A stretch of DNA of 64,000 nucleotides from the IMG/VR virus record IMGVR_UViG_3300040801_004034, positions 157,293 through 221,292 of that record, one strand, 5' to 3'. Within the stretch, counting starts at the first letter, position 1; each line of letters opens with the position of its first letter. The position numbers and the translations under genes were made by a program. Of the stretch, positions 1,103 to 53,267 are shown one piece after another. The notes beneath the pieces are model-generated. The model did no database searches and was not told the origin of the DNA. It saw only the letters and a list, made by a program, of their open reading frames with translations.

Positions 1103-2866
1103 TTAAGCTACTGGCTCTTCTGGCACCGGTTCACCAACCGGTGTCTCCGGCTCTACTGGTATATCTTCAGTACCCCCTGCATCAGCTGGAGCTCCTCCGA
1201 AGTCAGGGATTCCGCCACCTCCTCCGCCGAGGTCCGCTCCGCCGAGATCACCTTCTGCTCCTTCAACACCTTGCTCCATATTTTCTCTCCAGTCAGGACC
1301 ACCTGCAGTAATTTGTGCAATTTCCCAATCAGTTTCAGCATCTTTACGACGTGCATGTCTATTAGCTTTAATACGGTCATCATCCCAACCAAGATAAAGC
1401 TTTTGTGCAAATGTTGGTGATATACTTTCATTACCAGCAATAGCATTAAAGTTGTCCATTCGTAGAGACAATTTCTGACTTTCACGCATTTCGTAAAAGT
1501 TAGTCGGTACATTCATTGTAATATCAATGTTATGCGCTTTGATATCAAATTTCTTATCTAGCTTTTTAAGCTTAAGATGAGCAATAAATCCGTTTTTAAG
1601 ACCGTTAGCAAACTGCTGCTGTAATCTGATAATAAAATTAGCAAATCTAAGTTCTTGTCTTAAGATTTCATTACCATCAGAAAAACCTTGTTCTGGGTTT
1701 ATACGAGTACCTGGCACTTTAAGTGCTTTGTAAAGCTTTTCGACGAAGTAAAGCAAGTCTGTAAGCTCACCGAGGTTTTGACCACCTTCAAGTTGTGTAA
1801 CGGATGTACCTTCACTACCAGTACGCTTTGCGAACCAGAAACTATCTAGCATACTTTGAGGATTGAATTTTTGTACTTGACCTTCTTGATTCGTGTCAAA
1901 CGTCTTTTTGCTCCAATACTGCTGAATTAATTTACGGAGATAAGCTTCTGCTTTTGGTGGCGGAAGGTTACCGGTATCAACATTGAATACTAGACGTTCT
2001 GGTGCACGAACTAGACGATAGATTACAATAGAATCTTCAATAAGAGACAGCTGTCTATATGCACGTCTACCGTTTTCAATATGCGGCATTCTAAACGTCT
2101 TATCGTGATTCCAAACACCAGAGTGTACATATGTAATTTGATTTTCTTCCATCGGAATCAAATCGTATCCGACAACCTTTTCAGGCTTCTGTGGATCAAA
2201 GATTGGTTTACGTAAAATATACCCTTTGATCATCATGTTTTGAATATTATCAAAAATAGGATCAATCAACTCACATGGTAATGTTACAGCACCTAAAATA
2301 CCTTCATCTATATGATTGTTATGAATGATGTGTTCAAAATAAACTTCCCCTTCAATTAACAACTGTCTGAAATACTCGAACCCTTTCTTCTCTAACTCGA
2401 AATGATCTACATATTTTTGAAATTCTTCTTTAAGTAAAGTTTCATATTCTGAATCGATTTCAGTATTTTTAATTTTAAGATAAGCTACACGACCTTCATC
2501 ATCAAGGTTAACACACTCATCGCAAATTTCATCTAGTGCTGTTGCAACTTCAGCAAAGGCAGCCATAACTCTATACTCAGATAATCTACCACCTTTATTC
2601 TCATCGATATTAGAATAAACAAGCTGCGCATAATCACCATCTCTTGAAATAGCTGCTGCTCCTTGTTCATTATACCCGTTGTTATAAAATATACTATTCT
2701 TAGCTAGTGCTTCATTGCGATCCATGCCCAATTGCTGGAAAGCTGGGTATTTTGGATTCAGGTTGCCGAACACATTATCAAAGTCTACCGGTTGATATGG
2801 TAGTTTGTTTGTTAAATTCTTGAATAGGTCAGATTTAAAGAATCCTTTTTTATCGTCTTGAGCCAT
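1103..2866 (-). CDS. gp20: T4 gp20-like portal vertex protein
   Basis: EDSIVIYRLVRAPERLVFNVDTGNLPPPKAEAYL, DSFWFAKR, TQLEGGQNLGE, LYKALKVP motifs typical of T4-like portals. Confidence 0.95.
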   Translation of the reverse strand: MAQDDKKGFFKSDLFKNLTNKLPYQPVDFDNVFGNLNPKYPAFQQLGMDRNEALAKNSIFYNNGYNEQGAAAISRDGDYAQLVYSNIDENKGGRLSEYRVMAAFAEVATALDEICDECVNLDDEGRVAYLKIKNTEIDSEYETLLKEEFQKYVDHFELEKKGFEYFRQLLIEGEVYFEHIIHNNHIDEGILGAVTLPCELIDPIFDNIQNMMIKGYILRKPIFDPQKPEKVVGYDLIPMEENQITYVHSGVWNHDKTFRMPHIENGRRAYRQLSLIEDSIVIYRLVRAPERLVFNVDTGNLPPPKAEAYLRKLIQQYWSKKTFDTNQEGQVQKFNPQSMLDSFWFAKRTGSEGTSVTQLEGGQNLGELTDLLYFVEKLYKALKVPGTRINPEQGFSDGNEILRQELRFANFIIRLQQQFANGLKNGFIAHLKLKKLDKKFDIKAHNIDITMNVPTNFYEMRESQKLSLRMDNFNAIAGNESISPTFAQKLYLGWDDDRIKANRHARRKDAETDWEIAQITAGGPDWRENMEQGVEGAEGDLGGADLGGGGGGIPDFGGAPADAGGTEDIPVEPETPVGEPVPEEPVA

Positions 2867-2908: not shown

Positions 2909-4084
2909 TTATAGATCGTATGATATATAGTTACCAGAGAGGTCAGTTATAACCTGATCGAGATAAGTCACAATACCGATACCACTGTCTAACATCATAA
3001 TATTCGTATCACCAGCACTGAAAGATTGTGTATTTAGCGTGTAACTACTATCTGTGTATCCAGCATCATTAATTGTAACAAACACCACATCAAATGACGA
3101 TGCTGCACTTAATGATGGCAAGTCAAACATCAAAATATTATCATTTAAAACTGTCGGTATAATCTCTTGACCTGAAACCGGTGCTTGTTGAGATGTGAAT
3201 CCTGATACCGTTTTAACACTAGAGTACACATCCGGGTTATTCGATGATAATAATACAGTTTCAACATGATTGAAACCATACCCTTCAAGAGTTATATTAC
3301 CTGTTGTACCGTATGCTAATGGTAATCTAGTGAAAAGCTGTCGTTGACCGTAGTATATGCTTGTTATTTCAGGTGCACCGCTCAATACACGACGACTAAT
3401 ATCACCAGTATCAAGATCAGCTGATGTAATTAGATTAACATCGTAAAAGTTTTGTCTTATATTATGAATTTCACCTACTGGATCAGCTGTATCTTTAAAC
3501 AACCATCCTTTAAGAGTGAAGTTCGTTTCAGAAACAACTCTATCCTTTTTTGATGAATCTCTATTTAGTTCATGCGTCGTTGATATATCACCGCTCCACA
3601 ACACCGTTGTTCGAATTTCCTGTATGTTTGGAAGTTTAAATTGTATTGGCACCGGCCAACTTATAATAACATACGGGTCACAAAAAGGTATGAAATTCGA
3701 TATAATCTGATCCATATCAGTATCATAACGCGACATAATTGCCATCGATATCTCAATATTTACCGGTACAGGGGCTTTAATATGTGAATGACTTGCTGCT
3801 TCAGTTAAATCACTAAAGTACCCGCCGTCGATCTTATTACGTTGTCTGACGCTATCACGTTTTAACCCAGTCATATTAACACTCACAACCGGTAATGTAA
3901 GTGTTTTATTCTCATTAACAATGTCGTGCATCACACGTTCTTTCGGTGCATACACGTATCTTACACTGATTCGATCTTGTTCAGAACGATTTTTGTTATA
4001 GCGACCAATAACTATATCATCGAACGCAGCACAAAACTGCGTGATAATATCTGAAATTTCAAAATAGAATGGACGGGACTTCAC
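2909..4084 (-). CDS. gp15: T4 gp15-like tail terminator / sheath stabiliser with C-terminal extension
   Basis: N-terminal FYFEISDIITQFCAAFDDI, YAPKER, TLPVVS, PVPVNIEISM, DMDQIISNFIPF match gp15; GTG start after TAAATA. Confidence 0.8.
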   Translation of the reverse strand: MKSRPFYFEISDIITQFCAAFDDIVIGRYNKNRSEQDRISVRYVYAPKERVMHDIVNENKTLTLPVVSVNMTGLKRDSVRQRNKIDGGYFSDLTEAASHSHIKAPVPVNIEISMAIMSRYDTDMDQIISNFIPFCDPYVIISWPVPIQFKLPNIQEIRTTVLWSGDISTTHELNRDSSKKDRVVSETNFTLKGWLFKDTADPVGEIHNIRQNFYDVNLITSADLDTGDISRRVLSGAPEITSIYYGQRQLFTRLPLAYGTTGNITLEGYGFNHVETVLLSSNNPDVYSSVKTVSGFTSQQAPVSGQEIIPTVLNDNILMFDLPSLSAASSFDVVFVTINDAGYTDSSYTLNTQSFSAGDTNIMMLDSGIGIVTYLDQVITDLSGNYISYDL

Positions 4085-4092
4085 ACAATTAT

Positions 4093-4557
4093 TTAATCAA
4101 CTTCCCACGGGAAGTGAATCCAACTAGTGCCTGCATTTCCGCAGTGATATGTTTTAATATCAAATGTTGTATCATCACGTCTTAACAATGAGCAATATGT
4201 TACATTTATTTGAGGGTAAAATGTGGATAAAAATACAGAAACTTTTCTGAATGTTTCTCCGGAATCATTAATATCATCCACAACAATAACATTTTTAAAC
4301 ATGTCTAATTGCGGTGTCTGTTTAATACACCCAGCACCATCTCTCAAGCTAACTGAGAAATTAACGAGTTCATTACAACCGAACTTGTATGCTAACATAG
4401 TGGCAGGAATTAAGCCGCCTCTACCTATTCCGATAACACAGTCAGTTTCAATCTCGTCAACTTTAAGTTGATTATGTAAATCAGTGATGTAATGATCTAC
4501 ATATTCCCATGGTAAAGAAAACTTATCATGCGGTTTTTCAGTTTTAAATAAATGCAT
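4093..4557 (-). CDS. purine phosphoribosyltransferase (gpt/hpt-like)
   Basis: IGIGRGGLIPA, PRPP loop VVDDINDSGETF, C-terminal WIHFPWE. Confidence 0.85.
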   Translation of the reverse strand: MHLFKTEKPHDKFSLPWEYVDHYITDLHNQLKVDEIETDCVIGIGRGGLIPATMLAYKFGCNELVNFSVSLRDGAGCIKQTPQLDMFKNVIVVDDINDSGETFRKVSVFLSTFYPQINVTYCSLLRRDDTTFDIKTYHCGNAGTSWIHFPWEVD

Positions 4558-4584: not shown

Positions 4585-4959
4585 TTAATCCATGTATGCA
4601 TCATATGTATTTTTAAAGTGTTTTAATAAAGACAGCTTATCATCAACTGCATAAACACCATTATCAAGCATACGCTTAATATCTTCAACACATCTTCGCA
4701 TCAAATTTTCCAACTGTTCTAATCTCATTGAACCGTACCCTGGTACAAGAATTTCACTACTGTCGGAAATTTCTGATTCCTGCTCTACACCTGTACTTGC
4801 ACTGTATGGTGATCCTTCCACTTTACCTTTACCTTGGAGACCAGGAAAAGCACTGGATGGTCCTTGACTATGAGGTGCATATTGACTATTTTGTCTTGTT
4901 TGATTGTATGCACCAGGATAATTTTCCATGATTAATTCGTTATCGCTCTTTTCGATCAT
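4585..4959 (-). CDS. hypothetical late protein, possible internal head protein
   Basis: TAAGTA box at 4965-4970; N-terminus DNELIMENY resembles that of 35076..35438. Confidence 0.5.
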   Translation of the reverse strand: MIEKSDNELIMENYPGAYNQTRQNSQYAPHSQGPSSAFPGLQGKGKVEGSPYSASTGVEQESEISDSSEILVPGYGSMRLEQLENLMRRCVEDIKRMLDNGVYAVDDKLSLLKHFKNTYDAYMD

Positions 4960-4970
4960 ATCATTACTTA

Positions 4971-5420
4971 TTAGAAAAAGTCATCTAATCTTGATGCAAT
5001 TTTTTCCCATTCTTTACATTCATGTTCATATTTGTTATTTGCATATTTATCATGATCAATATCATCATTAGAGTCCGGAACGTAATCGACTACATCTCTT
5101 ACAGGTGCTCTATCAATGTTGCATTGTATCCAGTGTTTAAATTCATGTACAATAGTCTGTATAACGAACTGTCGCTTTGTACGGAACACTCGAGCACCAT
5201 AAAATTCGTCCCCAATCTGAATCTCGTTTGTACCCCATATATACCCAGAAACTGGTCCTGGTACGACAGAAATACTCAACGTATAAAACCAAATTTTAGT
5301 TGTTCTCTTATGATGATTAGCAAGAAATGATAGACAATTTTCTAAACGATGCTTCTTAATTCCGTATTCCTTTAGAAGTTTTCTAAACTTTGCATCATAT
5401 TCTATCGAAATAACTATCAC
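4971..5420 (-). CDS. HExxH putative metallopeptidase-like protein
   Basis: TIVHEFKHWIQ motif with downstream YEHEC. Confidence 0.5.
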   Translation of the reverse strand: MIVISIEYDAKFRKLLKEYGIKKHRLENCLSFLANHHKRTTKIWFYTLSISVVPGPVSGYIWGTNEIQIGDEFYGARVFRTKRQFVIQTIVHEFKHWIQCNIDRAPVRDVVDYVPDSNDDIDHDKYANNKYEHECKEWEKIASRLDDFF

Positions 5421-5815
5421 AGACTTTCAGTTCTATTTTCTTTTAAAACATCGATAAGTGTTCTGAATGATTTTCTTCCTGCTTCTTCAGCAGCTTCTTT
5501 ACTTTCAAACCCGAAATTGTACTTATCAGGGGGATATTGTTCTTTCTCAGATTCTGTTTCGTCTTTTACTGTATCGACTTTAAGGTATTTGAATGCCCAT
5601 TGAGCACCTGCTATAAATGCCTTGTGAGCTTCCGTGGTAAACATGTCACCATCTTCAACCTTATCCATGCCGTTTTCTTCGCTATACTCATCTATGCCAT
5701 AGCACATAGCGGTCCAATCATCAATAAAAAGATCTCCTTTTTTATAACACTCCTTACGACACTCTTCCCAGATTCGTATAAATCGTTCATCTGTAATTGG
5801 CTTCATATTTTCCAT
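5417..5815 (-). CDS. hypothetical protein
   Basis: ORF; TATAAT 6 nt upstream of ATG. Confidence 0.6.
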   Translation of the reverse strand: MENMKPITDERFIRIWEECRKECYKKGDLFIDDWTAMCYGIDEYSEENGMDKVEDGDMFTTEAHKAFIAGAQWAFKYLKVDTVKDETESEKEQYPPDKYNFGFESKEAAEEAGRKSFRTLIDVLKENRTESL

Positions 5816-5840
5816 AACTCTATTATAATATATTTTTATA

Positions 5841-6443
5841 TTATGTCCACATTTGCTTACGATTTCTGATAATCCAGCTCATGTAAAATTCTTCTTGTTT
5901 GTTTAGCTTTTCTTCAAGCTTATCATGGTGACTATAGCATTCTTCATATGAAAACTTAGATGGTTTCAATTTCTTTAATGATAGTTGATCGTCAATTTTA
6001 CATGGTTCATCTTCCCATTCAAGTGGTCCAGCTTTATTCGTTGCAGCTGTGAGTGCATCATCTATTTGTTTCTGTAATTTCGGTCGGCGAACCTTCACAA
6101 AATCATAACAATCTGTAAGTTCTTTTGCAAACTTCTTATGATCATCACAATCATCATATGCGACCCGTTCAAAACATTCTTCACCTTCTACGAAATGAAT
6201 AACACAACCGAATAAAAATTCCTCGATAAGATAATCTTTATCATGCCATTCATATTTCGGAATGTATGTTCGTACCCAACGTTGTGGTGACTTGAAGAAC
6301 TGCTTAATGTAATCAAGCCAGTTCATTCGATATCGGGGTAGAATGAATCCCCACACATCATCAACGAAGAAGTCGTAAACATCATATACGAATTTCGGAA
6401 GATTATACATCCTCCATTCCATTTTGAATTTAAAATCGTTCAT
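5841..6443 (-). CDS. hypothetical protein
   Basis: 200-aa ORF abutting neighbours; ends WIIRNRKQMWT. Confidence 0.65.
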   Translation of the reverse strand: MNDFKFKMEWRMYNLPKFVYDVYDFFVDDVWGFILPRYRMNWLDYIKQFFKSPQRWVRTYIPKYEWHDKDYLIEEFLFGCVIHFVEGEECFERVAYDDCDDHKKFAKELTDCYDFVKVRRPKLQKQIDDALTAATNKAGPLEWEDEPCKIDDQLSLKKLKPSKFSYEECYSHHDKLEEKLNKQEEFYMSWIIRNRKQMWT

Positions 6444-6706
6444 TATGTTATTGGTTCAATTTCAAAACATTCGAGCCTTTGAAACAATTCGTTTTGTGAT
6501 ACAACCGTGATACCTTTTCCAGACAAGCTGAAAACATAAACATATAATGCGTGTATACCTCTGCTTCCAACAGTACGTTTGAATTCACATGTAAAGTAGA
6601 TACAATCACCTTCTTTAATATCACAAAAACCATAAGCTGTTGTTTTCTTTTTGATTGCAGTTACCCTATACTGGCCTGATTGAAATGGTATTGTTAATTC
6701 TTCCAT
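6443..6706 (-). CDS. hypothetical protein (start revised to ATG 6706)
   Basis: first ATG after the structured 6716-6925 element. Confidence 0.5.
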   Translation of the reverse strand: MEELTIPFQSGQYRVTAIKKKTTAYGFCDIKEGDCIYFTCEFKRTVGSRGIHALYVYVFSLSGKGITVVSQNELFQRLECFEIEPIT

Positions 6707-6715
6707 ATAAAAGGT

Positions 6716-6925
6716 GAGGTTCAAGAACCGAAGTTCAACGAAAAGTTTCGCTGCTAAGTTTTTTGTTTTACGATTTTCGTTTTACAGTTTACAGAAGCTA
6801 AATTTTGTATTTTAGATGTCGATATCTGTATATATACGAAGTCCGATTGGACCAGTTCATCAAGTCTCCGAAGAGAGTATGATAAGTGCTACTTGCTTTT
6901 CATACCCGCCCGATTCTATCCCCTC
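6716..6925 (-). ncRNA. candidate structured ncRNA / 3' element with 7-nt A-rich repeats
   Basis: closing helix GAGG..GAATCGGG / TTCGGTTC..CCTC; stems GTATGA/TCATAC, TCTC-TTCG-GAGA (cUUCGg), GTCC-AATC-GGAC, CAGCGAA/TTCGTTG; heptad run in between. Confidence 0.6.
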
Positions 6926-6930
6926 ATAAA

Positions 6931-7374
6931 CTAAATTGATGTTGTTGCGTTGAAATCATCGACCTCGTCTTGAAGATCATTGATCTCTTCTTTGATCACT
7001 TGCAATCTTGCGTCAACATCATCTTGGGTAACAAAAGCTTCAAACACATCATATTCTTCAGGTGCATCGCGCGTGAATCGAGATTTACTAAACTTACCTT
7101 CTTTTGTGTCGAGGCATTCGAAAAAGCCTAGCTGTCCTTTGAGTTCAGCCATTCTGATCAGCTTAACTGCAATTGGTGCAGTTGCAACTTGAATTGCAGC
7201 CTTGAGACTAATCAGTTGAGCAAGTTTATCATCAAGTTGAACGAACGACTCACTAACTTTAGTATGATTAAACTTATCTTCAAGCTGTGAATTCTCACGG
7301 TTAATGATAGATTTAACTGTGTTGATCTCACCTACAAGGCGATTTTTAACTTTTAATGCTTTGCTTAATTTCAT
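6931..7374 (-). CDS. all-helical DIP1984/DUF6847-like protein
   Basis: MKLSKALKVKNRL...LKAAIQVAT...INDLQDEVDDFNATTSI resembles that family from memory; own GGAAC-N5-TATAAT promoter at 7381-7396. Confidence 0.5.
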   Translation of the reverse strand: MKLSKALKVKNRLVGEINTVKSIINRENSQLEDKFNHTKVSESFVQLDDKLAQLISLKAAIQVATAPIAVKLIRMAELKGQLGFFECLDTKEGKFSKSRFTRDAPEEYDVFEAFVTQDDVDARLQVIKEEINDLQDEVDDFNATTSI

Positions 7375-7793
7375 AGTTGTATTATATCGTTGTTCCTATT
7401 ATTTTTTACCCTTTTCGTAAATTTCTTTCATTGTTCTTTTACATCCCACACAGTATGTTTTACACCTGCTTAGTTCACATTTTCGAATGCACTGTTTCAT
7501 ACATGTCTATCCCAGAATATTCCACCTAACCATAGAAAGATGCATGAACGAGCTGTTTTTCTAATACGGAATTGATTTCTCGATACACGCTCGGTTGAAC
7601 TTGGCGGGAATTTATCGCGAGTTATTTCAAAATTATTCCAAAATATCAGCGGAAGAATTTCCATCCCCGCTTCGATATTACCTTTACTGGTATAGAAATT
7701 AGCAACTGCAGTATTGCGGTTCTTCCAACCATAAAACTCGAACAATTCAATCTCGATAAATCTACCAGACTTCGTTGTAATATTCCACTTCAT

Positions 7794-8243
7794 TTACTCT
7801 GCTTCTTTTACCATAGCATCAAAGTCAATTGCATTAACAGCATTAACGATGATTACAGGTTCTTTCGTCTTTACACTGATATCTCGTTCAGTAAGAAGCT
7901 TTCTCTTTACGTCTCCCATAGCGTTAGCAATGGTCTCCACTGGAATCTTCATGCCTTTACGTGTGAGATTGTGTTCAGCTGCTGCTTCTTTAATGCGTTT
8001 CACAACATCAACATGCGGAACACTTTCAGGCGTCTGAACAATATACATTGGAATTTCAGCAATGTTTTCATCTTCACTCAATGCAACAATTACGAATTGC
8101 TTCGGCTCTTTTGGGAGAGGCGGCTCTTTTGCTGCTTCTTGTTCAGCTTCTGCTTTGCTGATAATTTCTGCTCGTGTCGGCAAGTCGAGTTGCGGATAAT
8201 CTGCTAGGACGCTTTCGAATATTTCTTTGTCTATTTTTTTCAT
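7794..8243 (-). CDS. hypothetical protein
   Basis: ORF with GGAAC-N5-TACAAT at 8256-8271. Confidence 0.65.
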   Translation of the reverse strand: MKKIDKEIFESVLADYPQLDLPTRAEIISKAEAEQEAAKEPPLPKEPKQFVIVALSEDENIAEIPMYIVQTPESVPHVDVVKRIKEAAAEHNLTRKGMKIPVETIANAMGDVKRKLLTERDISVKTKEPVIIVNAVNAIDFDAMVKEAE

Positions 8244-8292
8244 AAATTCTAAATGATTGTAACACTGTTCCTTCTTGAATAAATAATAAAAT

Positions 8293-9606
8293 ATGACAAT
8301 TACAAAATTTAGTCAGCTCGTAAAGCTCGTAAATGAAGAGTTTTACAAAGATGGTGATACATTAAAGTTTACAACAGATTCAAACGATGATAATGTATTG
8401 AAATTTACTGATTCTTTAACAACAGTTAAAGGTGATAATTCAACATTTATAAGAAACAGGGGATTATCTCAAGGTAATTGGCATAGAGTGTATTATGGGT
8501 ATGATGTTGTGGACGATACCGATATGAGAAAAAGTGTTATGAGAATACCGAAGACATTTACATCGGGTTCAGCTGATCCAAAATCATACGATTCAAACAT
8601 AAATACAACACATTATGATTATGATGCATTTACTGATAAGGAATATCAAATGTTAATAGATAGAGCAATTGATGGGTTCGTATCAAAACCATACACAGCT
8701 AAGACGCATTATAATTTAATTGTGTATCCGAGTAGTAGATCACCTCATGTTATGGATATTGTACAGTCAATTCAAAATAAAATTGGTTATGAATTACCAG
8801 CTATAGAACACAAAAAAATTCCTAATACAACAACAGGTTGGAAACAAATATTTGGATTAAATGACCCAGATAACAGTAAAAATATTGTCAATACGCTGTA
8901 CAATAAAATCTTCGGAGATGCTAATCATTCCAGTAATGTAGCAGCTACTGCAAAAACAGAAATAAATGATGCTGCAAATGCGGTAATGACAAACCATAAA
9001 AGCAATGACGATAAATACATTTCAGTTGCAACTCATTTACGCGGTGCAGGTGAGCCGGTTTTAATACAACAAATAATCGATGCGTTAAACCAAAATGGGT
9101 TCTTCGAAAAATTTCCAGGTGCTAAACAACCTAAGCTAGGTGGTCATTTAGATCAATATGCAACTAATTCTGTATTCAGACAAGAAAGACTGAACAAAAA
9201 GCTTGGTGAGGATCAGCTTAATATTTTATTTGTGGATGATAATATTAATACAGGGGATACGTATAAGCAGTTACAAGCTGTAATTACAAAATCGCCTGAT
9301 CAGCATTGGGATTTCTTTTACCTTATTAAAAAGGAAAGTTATGGAAATACAGAAGGTGATATTGGTACTGGGGAAATCGAACAGCTTGAATCACAAAAAG
9401 TTAGTATTTCAAAAACGATTTCCGATCTCAACCTTAGGCTCAAAAAATTGAACGATGTTGAAAATTTCTCTTCTATGGACCTTGGTTTGAGCGATATGAG
9501 ACGAGAAAAGGAGCAAAAGGAAAAGACAAATCAGTTAGAATCACTTACAAACCAGCTTGCTGAACTTGAAAAGAAGATCAAGCAACTAAGCTGGCAGAGG
9601 GAATAG
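8293..9606 (+). CDS. late protein with phosphoribosyltransferase-like domain and C-terminal coiled coil
   Basis: LIVYPSSRS and ILFVDDNINTGDTY (PRPP-binding loop); TAAATA at 8280-8285. Confidence 0.6.
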   Translation: MTITKFSQLVKLVNEEFYKDGDTLKFTTDSNDDNVLKFTDSLTTVKGDNSTFIRNRGLSQGNWHRVYYGYDVVDDTDMRKSVMRIPKTFTSGSADPKSYDSNINTTHYDYDAFTDKEYQMLIDRAIDGFVSKPYTAKTHYNLIVYPSSRSPHVMDIVQSIQNKIGYELPAIEHKKIPNTTTGWKQIFGLNDPDNSKNIVNTLYNKIFGDANHSSNVAATAKTEINDAANAVMTNHKSNDDKYISVATHLRGAGEPVLIQQIIDALNQNGFFEKFPGAKQPKLGGHLDQYATNSVFRQERLNKKLGEDQLNILFVDDNINTGDTYKQLQAVITKSPDQHWDFFYLIKKESYGNTEGDIGTGEIEQLESQKVSISKTISDLNLRLKKLNDVENFSSMDLGLSDMRREKEQKEKTNQLESLTNQLAELEKKIKQLSWQRE

Positions 9607-16628: not shown

Positions 16629-17069
16629 TTATAAATGTGTTCCTGTTGCAAGTTGAACATAAAATGGTACAAGAGCAATAAGCGTTACTGCGTGAATAAG
16701 CTGATCGATTCCAATTGTATTCCAAAATGCTTTATATTGATCACGTTGCCAGAATCGAGCTGTAAGTCTACTTGTACACCAATCTGTTGCAAAATGTGTT
16801 ACAAAAATATAAAAATATATTAACATATGAAACGAAAATGATCCCCAAAATCCCATATTAGGCAGCTCTGTTACAAAGCAAAGCGGCATCAAGATAAAAA
16901 GAAAAATCATCATGAATACAGTCCCTGTATAAATCGTAACGTGATCTAACATAACCCTGTTATCTGAGATTTTTTGTGTACCTATTTTTCTACTCTGAAG
17001 TAGAAAATCTCCGATATAATGCCCACTAAGTAAGACAGCTATAAAATAAATTGTAATATATTCAATCAT
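16629..17069 (-). CDS. DUF3307-like membrane protein
   Basis: HYIGDFLLQ...H...HFATD...GIDQLIH pattern. Confidence 0.7.
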   Translation of the reverse strand: MIEYITIYFIAVLLSGHYIGDFLLQSRKIGTQKISDNRVMLDHVTIYTGTVFMMIFLFILMPLCFVTELPNMGFWGSFSFHMLIYFYIFVTHFATDWCTSRLTARFWQRDQYKAFWNTIGIDQLIHAVTLIALVPFYVQLATGTHL

Positions 17070-17197
17070 AATCTTCTCCAATTCCAACTGTTCGATGTGC
17101 ATATCTCTCACCGCAAGAATATTCAGCGAGCTCTGAACTGCATAGAGATAATGTTCCGTCCTTCACTCTCTGAAAAAACAGATCGATCTCTAATTCC

Positions 17198-27217: not shown

Positions 27218-28152
27218 ATTGTTTTATGTTTTTGTAGAGCATTTTTAATTTGCTCTTGTTCTTGTTTGAGTTTCTCTTGACGAGCTTTCAGTCTTGAAAT
27301 TTCTTCTTGTTGTTCACGTTCTTTACGGCGTTCATTCAGATCTAACATTTCAGATCGTGGGTCTATACGTCGACGCTCTACTGTTTCATATTCGATGATA
27401 ACAAACTCGAGCTGTTGAAGGCGGCTTCTATTAAACGCATCAGCAGCTTTGACAGCACCCGTGAGTGATTTCCATTGTTTACCGCGGTTATTGATACCAT
27501 AATCGCCGAGAAATTTTTCAGTTTTTATATCTTGAACTTTATAAATCATAACAGTATTGTATCAATGTTCCTGTTTTAGAATTATACTACCTTTACCCAA
27601 ATCTTTAAACGCCCAATCATATGGTACCGTAACTGTAAATTCTGTTACAACTTTCGGTATATCCTTACCAGAGAACATTTTATCATATAAATGCTTACGA
27701 GTAAACATTCGTTTCGTTTTAATGTTCAACAGGTTAACCCCTTTAGGTGTAGATCGAATACACAAAAATACACTATCTGGTCTACCATATAGGCAGTATA
27801 AGTGTCCGATCTTCAATTTTATGTATTTAATCCGTATCATTTTTATCTATATCTTTAGCAATAGCTTCAACAATAAAATCATACACAAATTTTGTCGCTT
27901 CTTGTTGTTCTTTATAGAATAGTAATCTTGTTATAATAACTGAAATCAGCAATGTAAAAAATGTAAATACAAAGGCAATGCAAAAAATAGTGAAACTACT
28001 GAGAACCTCTATAACAGAATAACCATATGTAATACCCAAAAAAAGTTGAAATATATATACAGGCCATATTACAAGATCAGGATTCGTTTCAATCCACTCA
28101 CCACAGAACGTATAAAATGTTCTGTCATTAATTTCTATTCTCGTACGTGCCA

Positions 28153-28386
28153 TTACTTACGAAATCTATCTAGATATTCATCAAATGTTTGATCATGCGC
28201 ATGGTTATAAACATAATCAAAAAGAAATTCATTTGCATCTTCTGCATTAGTGAACTGTTCATCGAATCCATCCTCAGATAGTTGCGCATATAATTTATCG
28301 AAATATTCAGTCCGAACCTTTTCAAGTTCACCAATGAATGTTTTTACTCAATAGATTTCGTCTTCCCATTTACCTTTAATTTCCAT
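28153..28386 (-). pseudogene. small acidic protein with in-frame TGA at 28348-28350
   Basis: MEIKGKWEDEIY*VKTFIGELEKVRTEYF...DRFRK; fills the intergenic gap exactly. Confidence 0.55.
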
Positions 28387-28545
28387 ACTATTATTCTGTT
28401 TCTTGTTCATCATAAAATGTTTCTAAGATTTTCACGCTTGAAGCTGAGAAGTTGAGTTGTTCATAGATAAACTCTTCACAAGCTTCAACCATCTCAGCTT
28501 CTGTTTCATAACCATCCATGCAAAGTTCTATTAAAAATTTAGGCA

Positions 28546-50608: not shown

Positions 50609-53007
50609 TTAGTTTGAAATACTTCTAATAATCATTGCAAGAATCTCTGGTCGTTTTGTTACGAGAGATCCTATTACTTTACGTTCTACCGCAAACTTAT
50701 CATGCTGACCGCAAGGTAGTTCATCTGGTGCTTTGCGAAACATATAGCAGTAATCAGACCCTTCACCTTTACCTTGATGACGACACCCATCATAACTATT
50801 TGTTTCATTTTTCATATAGTGATTATATCATTGTTCCACTGCTTGGCGAATAGCTTGTCTAAACACCCATTCATCACTAACTTCAGTACTATCGAGTGGT
50901 GGATAACTTATTGTACGTTGAATATAACCTTCTTCATTTACCCAACTGAGATGACCACATTTATGTATATCAATCCGCCATGTTTCAAGATTCTCAGCTA
51001 CCCATTTAATCATTTCACTATCTGTCATTACACTTATTATAATATTGTTCCTACACTGAATATTCTTCACCTGATTTCACATCTTCAACATTCACCACAT
51101 CTATTTGAACCTAGTATTACTTATATTGTTATGATAAAAGTAAACCAGCTTGATATTGGATTGCAGTTAAACTAGCAGTATCTGTATTACAATTAGCAAT
51201 TTCGTCAATGAACTTACGATATTTTTCATTATCCTCAAGTTCTCTAAGCTTGATTCGAGCAACTGTTCGATCTTTTCGTCCAGTCTGAACACCACTAAAC
51301 CAATAATCATCAGCCTTTTCAAACAGTATAATAGCACCTGTTTTAGTTGACACATCTTCATTAATTACAGCATTCAGTAAATCTTCAATATCCGCAAGTG
51401 ATTCAAATGAGAATTGATGCTTCTTAATGTATTCTTGTGCATCGAATTTAGCTCGTTGAGCTTTACCACATTCTTCTGCTGCAAGAGCAATTTCTTGTAG
51501 TGCATCGATCTCAGTATCACTATACTGCGACACATCGATCTCGATCGGTTTCTTCGTTACTGAATCAACAAGTGCTTTACAAATTAATTTACCATCTTTT
51601 ATTTCCATAATTTTACTTTCGTTTGATAGTCAGATATTTACAATCTTCATCATTAGGCATACTATATACCAGATCATAATCATCAGCTCTCATGAGTTCC
51701 CAATCATATATATGCAGAGTGTGACCATTACTAGCAACAGCAGCAACTAAAAGATTCTTTAGATGCTCTTTATCTGTTACAATTACATCTGGTATTGGTT
51801 CAATGCGTTCTTCTCCATAACGGTCTTTGAACACTTTTCGCATCCCTTTACCATCATGGTACTCAACACAGGTACAGCTAACAATTACTTGGTGTGATAC
51901 ATAAAGATGGAAATCTTTTAATACGATATCTTTAATATCTTTTTGTTTACGTTCAGGTAACAAATCAGCTGTTGTTAATATTAAATTCATAGTTGTTAGT
52001 TTATAAAAGTTCCATTATCACCCCATGTTGTAACCTGGTCTAAAAACGCTTTTGTTGCTTTACTAATACTGTCGGAATACCGCAGTTGTTTCTGCAATTC
52101 TTGAGTAACGATTTTACTAAGCTGCTCACGAATACACTTACCCATATATTCCATGACTGTTGCTTCTGTTTCTCTAGCTGCATGTGGTATATCATCTACA
52201 AATATTTCACCACTAAACACATCTTCTTTTGTTCCAAGGATAAAATTACATCTATATTTGAAAGATGGTGTGTATTTAACACTATGACCTGTATATGCAA
52301 CCCATTCACCTGATACAATTGACGATTCAAACTTGCGTGTGAACAGGATACGATCGGGTACATCCTGTTCGATCTCTCTATACAGCTTATGATATTCGTA
52401 GACGTCTTTCATTTTAATGTAAGTCATCAGGATGAATACCGAACAGCTCTGACATTGGGGCTCTGAGTGCATCTTTCAGCTCATTATATGCTGTTTTGTA
52501 ATATTCAAGTTCGATTTCAGTAGATGTTTCTTCAACTTTAACATCATTGTATACATCTTGTGCGATCCTTTCAGCAATAGCGACAACACCCGGATCAGCA
52601 TATGAAAGATCTCCGAAGCCGCTTACTGAATAGCCAATGAGCTGGGCAAATTGCATACGATCTTCTTGTGTGAAAGATTTGTATGCAATGTCGTTCATAT
52701 CTATACCACCATTTGTAAGAATGTAGTCAACTATTTCGTTCGTTTTAAACCGTACAGTACCTGATTCAGTCTTGACGATTGGTTGCATTGGTTGTTTAGT
52801 ATTCATAATTTATCTAATATTTGAAATATCACAGCATGCTCCACAAGCTGATTTAAATCGTACCCATATCTTATCTTCGATTCCTTCTTTGATCGTCGAA
52901 ACATGCCCAACTTCACAATCTGGATGACTTGCATCACCATTTGCATGATTTGGGATATAGGTCACCGGATCACCAACAGTATAGTCACTAGCTTTTTTGT
53001 TCATATT

Positions 53008-53264
53008 TTACCCTGCTCTAAAATGTTTAACAATTGCAAGAATTTCTGGATCATCAGTTTCTTCTTTTGGAAAATCAACATTAGATGAACATAAAAAACT
53101 GTCAACATCTTTTAGTTCATCACTATCAACAAAAAGTTCATTGTATTCTTCTTTGTTGAAACAGTATATCGATAATCACCCCACTCAATAACTAAACCAT
53201 TTGGTTCAACTGTAGCCCATGCCATAGGATGATTTCTTGTTTTGTTAAGTTTTTGTTTTTTCAT
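53008..53264 (-). pseudogene. small gene with apparent frameshift near 53165-53172
   Basis: MKKQKL...IEWGDYR continues plausibly in a shifted frame YCFNKEEYNELF...KHFRAG*. Confidence 0.45.
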
Positions 53265-53267
53265 AAT

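Follow-up and report, generated by a model that had tools for sequence, protein, structure and literature searches.

Very few dedicated protein-RNA pairs are known in phages (pRNA, tmRNA, Y RNA, CRISPR-derived RNAs), and each of them has revealed a distinct mechanism. Among the described systems closest to the locus studied here, HutP of Bacillus subtilis is a small protein whose hexamer reads NAG triplets repeated with 4-nt spacers, that is with a 7-nt period, three at each of two sites on the hut mRNA; it needs histidine and Mg2+, and its binding destabilizes the terminator in which the triplets lie (PMC2425495). TRAP is a ring of eleven beta-sandwich subunits that binds one (G/U)AG triplet per subunit, with spacers of 2-3 nt, on the trp leader. 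The translational operator of T4 gene 32 is made of a folded nucleation element followed by more than 40 nt of unstructured RNA with UUAAA/UAAA repeats, which the phage protein binds cooperatively (PMC535899). In type III toxin-antitoxin systems (ToxIN), an endoribonuclease-fold toxin is bound by a non-coding RNA of tandem repeats of about 36 nt, encoded upstream of the toxin gene with a terminator in between. Other dedicated pairs are Ro60 with Y RNA (YrlA) and tmRNA with SmpB, whereas GOLLD and ROOL are ornate phage RNAs of unknown function that are often encoded beside tRNA genes. Finally, the DIP1984/DUF6847 protein family (PF20935) has a fold solved in 2009 (PDB 3KDQ) without a function, and its members are annotated as "septicolysin" in some records.

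We analyzed a stretch of 64,000 nucleotides (hereafter the window) that is part of a T4-like jumbo phage from a microbial mat. A first-pass annotation, made from the sequence alone, had pointed to a gene for a small DIP1984-like helical protein followed by a structured RNA with 7-nt periodic repeats. Everything it described in the sequence is present, and its observation is confirmed. The gene ends in TAG, and five bases later (TTTAT) starts the first strand of a helix that pairs the two ends of a 210-nt stretch. The next start codon is the ATG at 6706, resulting in an ORF-free stretch of 224 nt. The features of the locus are the following:

6931..7374 (-): gene for a 147-aa protein with a predicted DIP1984 fold, four helices and a beta hairpin, with a basic N-terminal helix and an acidic C-terminal helix
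6716..6925 (-): structured non-coding RNA of 210 nt, of a new family, from the first to the last base of the end-pairing helix
6909..6925 (-): 5' strand of the closing helix, with P1 GAGG (6925-6922) and P2 GAAUCGGG (6916-6909)
6716..6732 (-): 3' strand of the closing helix, with UUCGGUUC (6732-6725, pairing with P2) and CCUC (6719-6716, pairing with P1)
6888..6901 (-): P3 5' strand GAAAAG (6901-6896), then AGUA (6893-6890) and GC (6889-6888), one side of an inferred bulged-G (loop E / sarcin-ricin-like) motif
6740..6751 (-): partner side of this motif, GC (6751-6750), GAA (6749-6747), and P3 3' strand CUUUUC (6745-6740)
6857..6882 (-): hairpin with a cUUCGg tetraloop (core 6865-6876)
6840..6853 (-): hairpin GGUCC-AAUC-GGACU
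6815..6826 (-): GAUAUC GACAUC, the version in the window of the GAYnnnGAY motif that precedes the heptads in many loci
6751..6815 (-): heptad array, nine units in register, three plus six separated by 2 extra bases, with the family consensus K-Y-A-A-R-N-N, predicted to be less paired than the rest of the RNA
6754..6908 (strand not assigned): stretch covered by a metatranscriptome contig (155 nt, identical)
6443..6706 (-): next gene (87 aa, PHROG 5068, unknown function), not conserved next to the module elsewhere and probably not part of it

We first asked whether this exceeds chance when the window is taken alone. The fold of the minus strand has z = -2.86, with 2 of 200 shuffles as good, against z = -1.53 for the plus strand. 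A heptad profile trained on other loci hits only 6765-6831(-) when both strands of the 64 kb are searched (E 0.0076). In contrast, the end-pairing of the window is not better than that of cross-locus controls. The first-pass annotation had also stated that gene and RNA share one promoter. This claim was not verified: our promoter scan performed at chance level (8 found, 8.0 expected), and no terminator was found in the window. The decisive support is comparative.

The relation of the protein to DIP1984 holds at the level of the predicted fold. The AlphaFold2 model is confident (pLDDT 96), and its best matches in the PDB by Foldseek are 3kdq_A and 3kdq_C (TM 0.70-0.79, probability 1.0, full length). 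By sequence the relation is only weak: the NCBIfam model NF038048 (DIP1984_fam) gives 16.2 bits against a cut-off of 70 (E 0.009), the window protein has no Pfam hit, and 2 of 27 relatives hit PF20935 weakly (best E 2.4e-4), so that the phage proteins score far below the family cut-offs. In the nearest atlas clusters, 19-23% of the members carry PF20935. A search of the PDB by sequence gave only noise (L29, E 0.28). The N-terminal helix is basic in the whole family (net +4.4) and the termini are nearly invariant. A profile search found 1924 clusters at 50% identity, mostly viral. Nucleotide searches of the INPHARED phage collection found nothing, near or distant, and a protein search returned only two unannotated huge-phage records. 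A protein search of a plasmid collection, which does not include the Acinetobacter "septicolysin" plasmid GQ476987, was empty, and bona fide bacterial DIP1984 genes were not inspected, so that the presence of a downstream RNA in bacterial members was not checked. Literature searches on DIP1984, DUF6847, PF20935 and 3KDQ, and on phage RNAs beside tRNA clusters, gave no functional study.

A folded RNA of this kind follows the gene in about a hundred unrelated phage contigs, and we compared 90 non-redundant homologous loci. An isolate, Arcicella aurantiaca DSM 22214 (NZ_QGGO01000004.1), also carries gene and RNA. The gap after the gene has a median of 237 nt, against 22 nt for the other gaps in the same loci. 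No protein neighbor is conserved. We also searched IMG/VR with RNA motifs alone, and in 9 of the 9 places found the gene lies directly upstream, whereas the motif scans for the two GC-rich clades found nothing in this database. In loci where a small ORF is inserted after the gene, the RNA is still linked further on.

The first-pass annotation had specified that its idea would fall if homologous genes lacked a conserved downstream structure or heptads, or if the region were not transcribed, and the idea survived this examination: homologues in about 90 independent loci keep a structured RNA of ~200 nt with 7-nt periodic A-rich sites directly after the stop, and the only metatranscriptome contig on the 5 kb around the locus lies inside the RNA. 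The lag-7 excess is 0.26 against 0.12 in control DNA (p 5e-22), and 64 of the 90 loci exceed the 95th percentile of the control, whereas about a quarter do not pass the strict periodicity threshold. Among successive YAAR sites, 29% are exactly 7 nt apart, against 3.4% in shuffles, and the base before the YAAR core is never C. A profile trained on 33 loci finds 32 of 56 held-out loci at the right place and strand, with no true off-target hits in 278 kb. The number of sites in register varies from 3 to 11, and a lenient count of chains has a high background in shuffles, not far below the observed, so that a fixed stoichiometry is not shown. The array is less paired than the rest of the molecule in 58 of 64 RNAs.

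A plain alignment of all RNAs misaligns the ends and gives no consensus structure, and the same happened for clade F. Hence, we worked by clade and with covariance models. Closing helices of 12 bp and 22 bp show compensatory changes within clades. A covariance model seeded on one clade finds full-length matches in other clades, and 35 of 37 hits with E <= 1 are at the expected site. On 25 sequences, 88.2% of the cells are paired, against 60% in shuffles and 35-56% in slid controls, and 22 of 22 pairs show double changes, although this alignment was fitted to the model. Many G-U pairs fix the strand. In 51 of the 90 loci, the two arms of the locus pair better with each other than with all 25 foreign partners. 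In clade A, AGUAGC and GCGAA are conserved, and the GC/GC pairs are kept in 10 of 10 sequences; the assignment of the bulged-G motif rests on the AGUA/GAA consensus and is an inference.

The RNA matches no family of Rfam 15 (which includes GOLLD, ROOL, 6S, SRP, and RNase P) at the gathering score in the window, with only sub-threshold noise in 6600-7050. In 16 related loci, Rfam identified only neighboring tRNAs and one tmRNA elsewhere. Searches for tRNA and tmRNA with ARAGORN gave no match in the window nor at this position in related loci. We considered a tmRNA-like reading, since the GAYnnnGAY motif translates as Asp-x-Asp and suggested an Asp-x-Asp-x-Glu "tag". We rejected it because frames through the motif have no consistent start or stop, the two ends form no tRNA-like domain, and a related phage has a genuine tmRNA elsewhere.

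Among the 90 loci, 30 hold tRNA genes, 17 of them immediately adjacent to the module, and 130 of 130 tRNAs are on the same strand, while the other two thirds of the fetched stretches show none. A T-arm-like hairpin occurs in 11 of 90 RNAs, against 1% of shuffles. The window itself contains no tRNA gene, and the link with tRNAs does not hold here. Concerning expression, a metatranscriptome of the source sample has a single contig on the 5 kb around the locus (4600-9600), which lies inside the RNA, with none on the flanking genes, and the DNA depth is flat at 45x. This contig has a depth of only 2.9 and comes from a library that could contain DNA.

Our best reading is that of a two-part phage module, with the gene of the DIP1984-like protein and, on the same transcript directly after its stop codon, a stable structured RNA of a family not yet described. 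The analysis itself establishes that the ends of the RNA form a long covarying helix, that an unpaired, G-poor stretch carries about 6-9 KYAAR sites spaced 7 nt apart, and that gene and RNA travel together across very diverse phages with no other conserved partner. The rest is our inference: the newly made protein would bind its own RNA, starting at the closing helix and bulged-G motif and spreading over the heptad lattice, with one subunit or one binding site per heptad, the conserved basic N-terminal helix contacting the RNA and contacts between subunits setting the 7-nt register. The product would be a discrete ribonucleoprotein, which would be the active form. HutP and the T4 gp32 operator are precedents for oligomers or cooperative binders on periodic RNA. 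However, there is no direct evidence that the protein touches the RNA, its net charge is near 0 with a strongly acidic C-terminal helix, and it has no known RNA-binding domain. What the particle does is not known. Considering the position of one third of the modules in tRNA arrays and the T-arm-like hairpins, we place it with the tRNA or translation take-over or protection functions of the phage, and in this view the RNA is probably released by the enzymes that process the neighboring tRNAs. We are highly confident that this is a real conserved protein-RNA module, but the binding of the heptads by the protein as described is tentative, and the link with tRNAs or translation even more so. The interpretation given in the first-pass annotation is thus partly supported: a candidate protein-RNA system without a described counterpart is supported, the specific mechanism of one subunit per heptad of an oligomer remains an inference, the comparison with type III toxin-antitoxins is not supported, and a purely autoregulatory or attenuator reading fits poorly.

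Several alternatives seem less likely. The one we would retain before the others, although unlikely, is that the RNA is a decoy or sponge for another single-strand-binding factor of the phage or the host, with the DIP1984-like protein stabilizing or delivering the RNA, or acting separately. Candidates are a gp32-type SSB, Hfq, RNase E, Rho, or an A-specific endoribonuclease. A gp32-type SSB covers about 7 nt per monomer. The gp32 operator recognized in T4 has the same layout as this RNA (PMC535899), the window belongs to a T4-like phage, the array is G-poor and weakly paired, and the most frequent 5-mers in the arrays are UCAAA, AAAAU, AAAUU, UUCAA, UAAAA, and UUAAA. Yet the one invariant partner of the RNA is the DIP1984-like gene, the module occurs in very different phages, the sites are GCAAG rather than UUAAA in GC-rich clades, and the profile finds no second array in the 64-kb window. 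A mimic of a Rho rut site and an Hfq (ARN)n site were dropped, since the conserved core is YAA at period 7 and not YC dimers or triplets. It is more doubtful that the RNA is a cis-acting 3' element of the mRNA of the protein, i.e., an autoregulatory operator, a stabilizer, or a HutP/TRAP-type attenuator setting read-through into downstream genes when the protein binds the repeats. The helix starts a median of 4 bases from the first base of the stop codon and overlaps the stop in 28 of 67 loci, and translation and folding are therefore coupled; the 3+6 block layout also recalls HutP. However, in many loci an intrinsic terminator follows the RNA without overlapping the repeats, so there is nothing downstream to attenuate, and the downstream genes are not conserved. 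In several loci a small ORF separates gene and RNA, and the metatranscriptome contig covers the RNA but not the coding region. A 210-nt RNA with a bulged-G motif and, in some clades, a T-arm-like hairpin is also more than an operator needs.

Less likely still, the heptads might be codon-like triplets displayed in series (AAR for Lys, YAA/YAG for Gln or stop), with which the particle captures or shields anticodon loops of particular tRNAs, or misleads tRNA-directed nucleases of host defense, as an RNA-based counter-defense located in the phage tRNA array. The Y-A-A-R core, the location of modules in tRNA arrays, and the T-arm-like hairpins of some clades are in line with this idea, but it is entirely speculative and no pairing partner was tested. 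The stretch of the phage in the window and two thirds of the fetched stretches show no tRNA genes, and PADLOC, which does not cover counter-defense genes, has no match. A type III-like toxin-antitoxin or abortive-infection pair, in which the repeat RNA neutralizes a toxic protein, is very unlikely. It would account for a small protein next to a repetitive RNA, and relatives of the protein were annotated as "septicolysin" in plasmid papers, with no tested function. Toxicity was not assayed here, but the protein has no ToxN/AbiQ/CptN-like match in Pfam, NCBIfam, or PADLOC, and the family is overwhelmingly viral. Finally, it is most unlikely that there is no functional RNA and that the stretch is a DNA-level repeat (iterons, an origin or promoter spacing) or encodes a small peptide or a read-through extension of the protein. 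Some loci have ORFs of 45-68 codons in the gap, and in the window the frame 0 after the TAG meets only TAG stops until a TGA. Yet the ORFs are not conserved in start, stop, or frame, and a 7-nt period is incompatible with coding. Compensatory changes and frequent G-U pairs fit only an RNA of this strand. Read-through was rejected because TAG is an ordinary stop in this genome, in 24 of 119 ORFs, and other loci end in TAA or TGA.

The pair is widespread, in hosts ranging from AT-rich to GC-rich, and escaped annotation on both sides, since the protein is at best a remote DUF and the RNA is in no library. The result gives the DIP1984/DUF6847 fold its first concrete functional lead, and adds a compact, strongly covarying RNA with an unusual 7-nt lattice that structural biology can address directly. 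The frequent position of the module inside phage tRNA arrays bears on why large phages carry such arrays and on what else is processed from them. One may go further, although this is unlikely, and imagine a new class of phage ribonucleoprotein particle, with a ring or short filament of DIP1984-fold subunits ordered on an RNA displaying eight or nine codon-like YAAR triplets, acting together with the phage tRNA genes on host translation or against tRNA-directed host defense. In this case, the large DUF6847/DIP1984 superfamily would be a family of periodic-RNA-binding proteins.

When compared with the systems mentioned above, the module shares with the DIP1984 family the predicted fold, and the function is unknown in both. 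As in type III toxin-antitoxins, a protein gene lies next to a repetitive non-coding RNA, but here the units are of 7 nt, they lie downstream of the gene, the order of the parts and the terminator between them differ, and the endoribonuclease fold is not found. As for Ro60 with Y RNA and tmRNA with SmpB, we find a protein plus a dedicated stable RNA whose ends pair, with a tRNA-like T-arm in some members, and such pairs also occur in phages. However, there is no TROVE or SmpB protein, no match to Y RNA or YrlA in Rfam, no acceptor-stem mimic, and no tag reading frame. GOLLD and ROOL are three to four times larger and have neither a dedicated protein partner nor a heptad array. The operator of T4 gene 32 shares the layout of a nucleator followed by repeats, but it lies in the 5' leader and covers the ribosome-binding site of the gene, whereas here the RNA lies 3' of the gene; it has no end-to-end helix, and gp32 is an OB-fold, zinc-containing SSB and not a helical bundle. 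HutP has a different fold from the helical bundle with one hairpin of our model, and its Pfam family is not matched. The period of 7 and the 3+6 blocks resemble its two blocks of triplets, but the core is YAA(R) and not NAG, and on this point the comparison can be read either way. Where terminators are visible, they follow the closing helix and do not include the repeats, and the RNA, closed by a long helix, looks like a stable RNA; a HutP-type attenuator is not supported. TRAP, an attenuator that responds to tryptophan, reads its triplets with a period of about 5, while the period here is 7 and the predicted protein is helical.

The 64-kb window has 38% G+C and is 84% coding under the standard code, mostly on the minus strand. 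It is identical to part of a 221-kb IMG/VR contig from a microbial mat and is part of a T4-like jumbo phage. The first-pass annotation had described, downstream of the gene for a DIP1984-like helical protein, a non-coding stretch with pairing ends, a UUCG hairpin and a run of heptads. We found all these details in the sequence. The relevant features, all on the minus strand, are as follows.

1103-2866 (-), portal protein, named by PHROGs
2909-4084 (-), tail sheath stabiliser, named by PHROGs
4093-4557 (-), phosphoribosyltransferase, named by PHROGs
6931-7374 (-), gene of interest, 147 aa, ending in TAG
6925-6922 (-), GAGG, starting 5 bases after the stop and pairing with CCUC 6719-6716
6916-6909 (-), GAAUCGGG, pairing with UUCGGUUC 6732-6725
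6865-6876 (-), UUCG hairpin
6815-6751 (-), nine heptads, as three units, 2 extra bases, then six units
6706 (-), ATG of the next gene on this strand, 87 aa, PHROG 5068, unknown function

Between the two genes lie 224 bases with no ORF of 30 codons or more on that strand. The minus strand folds with z = -2.86 and the plus strand with z = -1.53. ARAGORN and Rfam found nothing. In the frame of the protein, the stretch after the TAG stop (6716-6933, minus strand) meets only TAG codons (four, counting the gene's own stop) until a TGA at the 3' end of the RNA. However, TAG is an ordinary stop in this genome (24 of 119 ORFs) and other loci do not show this pattern, so we judge it to be chance. Elsewhere in the window, the 437-aa ORF at 8293-9606 on the plus strand shows by eye a PRTase-like VDDxxxTGxT stretch, but has no family match. 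The largest stretches without an ORF of 70 codons, which were not examined, are at 52473-53267, 27923-28545 and 16679-17197 (795, 623 and 519 nt).

The protein has no match in Pfam, and NCBIfam gives DIP1984_fam with an E-value of 0.009 and 16 bits, against a cut-off of 70. Using an alignment of 27 homologues, AlphaFold2 produced a confident model (pLDDT 96) of four helices and a beta hairpin. The best matches of this model in the PDB are the two chains of 3KDQ, the DIP1984 protein of Corynebacterium diphtheriae, whose function is unknown (TM 0.70-0.79). Hence, the description of the protein as DIP1984-like is correct for the fold and remote for the sequence, and 2 of 27 relatives touch Pfam DUF6847 weakly. 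The family is large and mainly viral: the profile search identified 1924 clusters at 50% identity (E <= 0.001), and the nearest atlas clusters are 86-98% viral. The N-terminal helix is basic throughout the family (net +4.4) and the C-terminal helix is acidic (-4.9). The overall charge is near zero, and the most conserved residues sit at the two termini. No paper in the literature searched gives a tested function for DIP1984, DUF6847 or 'septicolysin'.

The first-pass annotation had put its own proposal at stake on whether homologous genes are also followed by a conserved structure and by heptads. We collected 37 viral, 5 genomic, and 73 metagenomic loci encoding relatives that are 27-50% identical to the protein of the window, which left 90 non-redundant loci with at least 260 nt after the stop. 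One of the collected loci, L041 (NZ_QGGO01000004.1), is from a cultured isolate, Arcicella aurantiaca DSM 22214, which carries both the gene and the RNA; its neighbouring ORFs have no PHROG match and do not show whether the locus is a prophage. The distance from the gene to the next ORF has a median of 237 nt (IQR 198-308), against 22 nt for all other inter-ORF gaps in the same loci. The lag-7 identity excess in the best 63-nt window has a median of 0.26, against 0.12 in control DNA from the same loci (p 5e-22), and 64 of the 90 loci exceed the 95th percentile of the control. Successive YAAR sites are exactly 7 nt apart in 29% of the cases, against 3.4% in shuffles. The unit reads K-Y-A-A-R-N-N, and C never precedes the Y. 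The GC-rich clades keep the period, with units that are GCAAG or UCAAG.

To assess the specificity of this signal, we trained a profile HMM on 33 loci, which found the array in 32 of 56 held-out loci, at the right place and strand. The only other hit in 278 kb is in the locus L094, where a small ORF has pushed the RNA further downstream. In the 64-kb window the only hit is the array itself, at 6765-6831 on the minus strand (E 0.0076). The array is G-poor (14% G) and less paired than the rest of the RNA in 58 of 64 cases.

In almost every locus the first ~30 nt after the stop pair with a segment 150-300 nt downstream, using quite different sequences. The helix starts a median of 4 bases from the first base of the stop codon, and the enclosed RNA has a median of 209 nt. 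In 51 of 90 loci the two arms of the locus pair better with each other than with any of 25 foreign partners, although the G-rich arm of the window is an exception. Analysis by clade with RNAalifold gave a 12-bp helix with six compensated pairs in the Verrucomicrobia-type clade, 15 pairs, of which seven are compensated, in the clade that contains the window, and 22 pairs in a third clade. A covariance model seeded on this third clade found full-length matches in other clades. After one iteration, 35 of 37 hits with E <= 1 in 404 kb lie at the expected site and strand. The window scores 25.8 bits (E 0.11), with a partly shifted register. Covariance model R2 also gave a weak, short match at 3413-3495 on the minus strand, inside the tail sheath stabiliser gene (24.7 bits, E 0.17), which is probably a false positive.

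On the 25 best matches, 88.2% of cells form pairs, against 60.0% in shuffles and 35-56% when the partner is slid. All 22 pairs show changes on both sides, and the covariation score is 0.59, against 0.18 in shuffles and at most 0.185 in slid controls. That alignment was fitted to the model, which favours the structure, but the slid controls and the independent within-clade alignments argue that the signal is real. Frequent G-U pairs fix the strand. In the clade of the window, the inner end of the helix carries AGUA-GC opposite GC-GAA (6893-6888 and 6751-6747 in the window), and the GC/GC pairs are kept in 10 of 10 sequences. By the known consensus this is inferred to be a bulged-G (loop E / sarcin-ricin type) motif, a common protein-binding site. 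Two other clades have GAA and AGUA on the opposite strands. Comparison suggests that in the window GAAAAG 6901-6896 pairs with CUUUUC 6745-6740, rather than forming the local hairpins of the minimum-energy fold.

Apart from the gene itself, no protein family recurs next to the module, and the largest other cluster occurs in 11 loci of closely related or GC-rich contigs. We found tRNA genes in the fetched DNA of 30 of 90 loci, 17 of which have one immediately adjacent, and all 130 tRNAs are on the same strand as the gene. In the related phage contig L024, a genuine tmRNA (Rfam RF00023, 90 bits, at 5868-6311) that ARAGORN had not reported lies 2.4 kb downstream of the module. Eleven of 90 RNAs, including those of loci L011, L040, L044, L052 and L055, carry a T-arm-like hairpin (GGUUCGAAUCC type), against 1% of shuffles. 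The RNA of the window has none. Many loci have an intrinsic terminator directly after the closing helix, and in L007, L046, L097-L110, and L109 it consists of a G+C-rich hairpin followed by a U run, which suggests that the RNA is the 3' end of the transcript in these phages. In L073, L078, L083, and L094 a small ORF lies between the gene and the RNA, yet the RNA is still found further downstream. This ORF encodes a Lys/Pro/Ala-rich basic peptide (MAKEK..PKK repeats) in the first three loci and an acidic one in L094. Scans of IMG/VR with conserved RNA motifs alone gave nine places, which are close relatives and make this a narrow test, and all nine have the gene directly upstream on the same strand.

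Three metatranscriptomes exist for the sample that also holds the DNA. Over window positions 4600-9600 they contain a single contig, of 155 nt and identical, which lies at 6754-6908, wholly inside the RNA. For comparison, the DNA run is flat at 45x. We estimate that a randomly placed contig of 155 nt would fall inside the 210-nt RNA about once in 90 trials. The depth is only 2.9 and DNA carry-over cannot be excluded, but this is weak but specific support for an RNA that is more abundant than the flanking mRNA.

Taken together, the observation made in the first-pass annotation is confirmed and extends to a widespread family. Its interpretation as an RNP is partly supported, being the best available reading but untested. 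What the analysis shows directly is a conserved, strand-specific, structured RNA of a family absent from Rfam 15, its tight link to a DIP1984-fold gene, and a 7-nt lattice of KYAAR sites in an accessible stretch. From this we infer that the protein made from the same transcript binds the RNA, nucleating at the closing helix and bulged-G motif and occupying the lattice at one site per heptad, to form a defined particle. The function of such a particle is open: the context of tRNA arrays, which is absent in the window itself, points to translation, tRNA processing or defence against tRNA-directed nucleases. We also considered that the RNA could be a decoy for another single-strand binder, a cis-acting 3' operator, a codon-display particle, part of a type III-like toxin-antitoxin, or a DNA or peptide artefact. 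The last two are poorly compatible with the data.

We found no described system with this layout in Rfam, Pfam, NCBIfam, PHROGs, PADLOC, the PDB or the literature searched, but two precedents make the inferred mechanism plausible. HutP is a hexamer, each face of which reads three NAG triplets with 4-nt spacers, at two sites of the hut mRNA (PMC2425495). The gp32 protein of T4 nucleates on a pseudoknot and spreads cooperatively over UUAAA/UAAA repeats (PMC535899). Membership in either family fails on fold, position and terminator logic.
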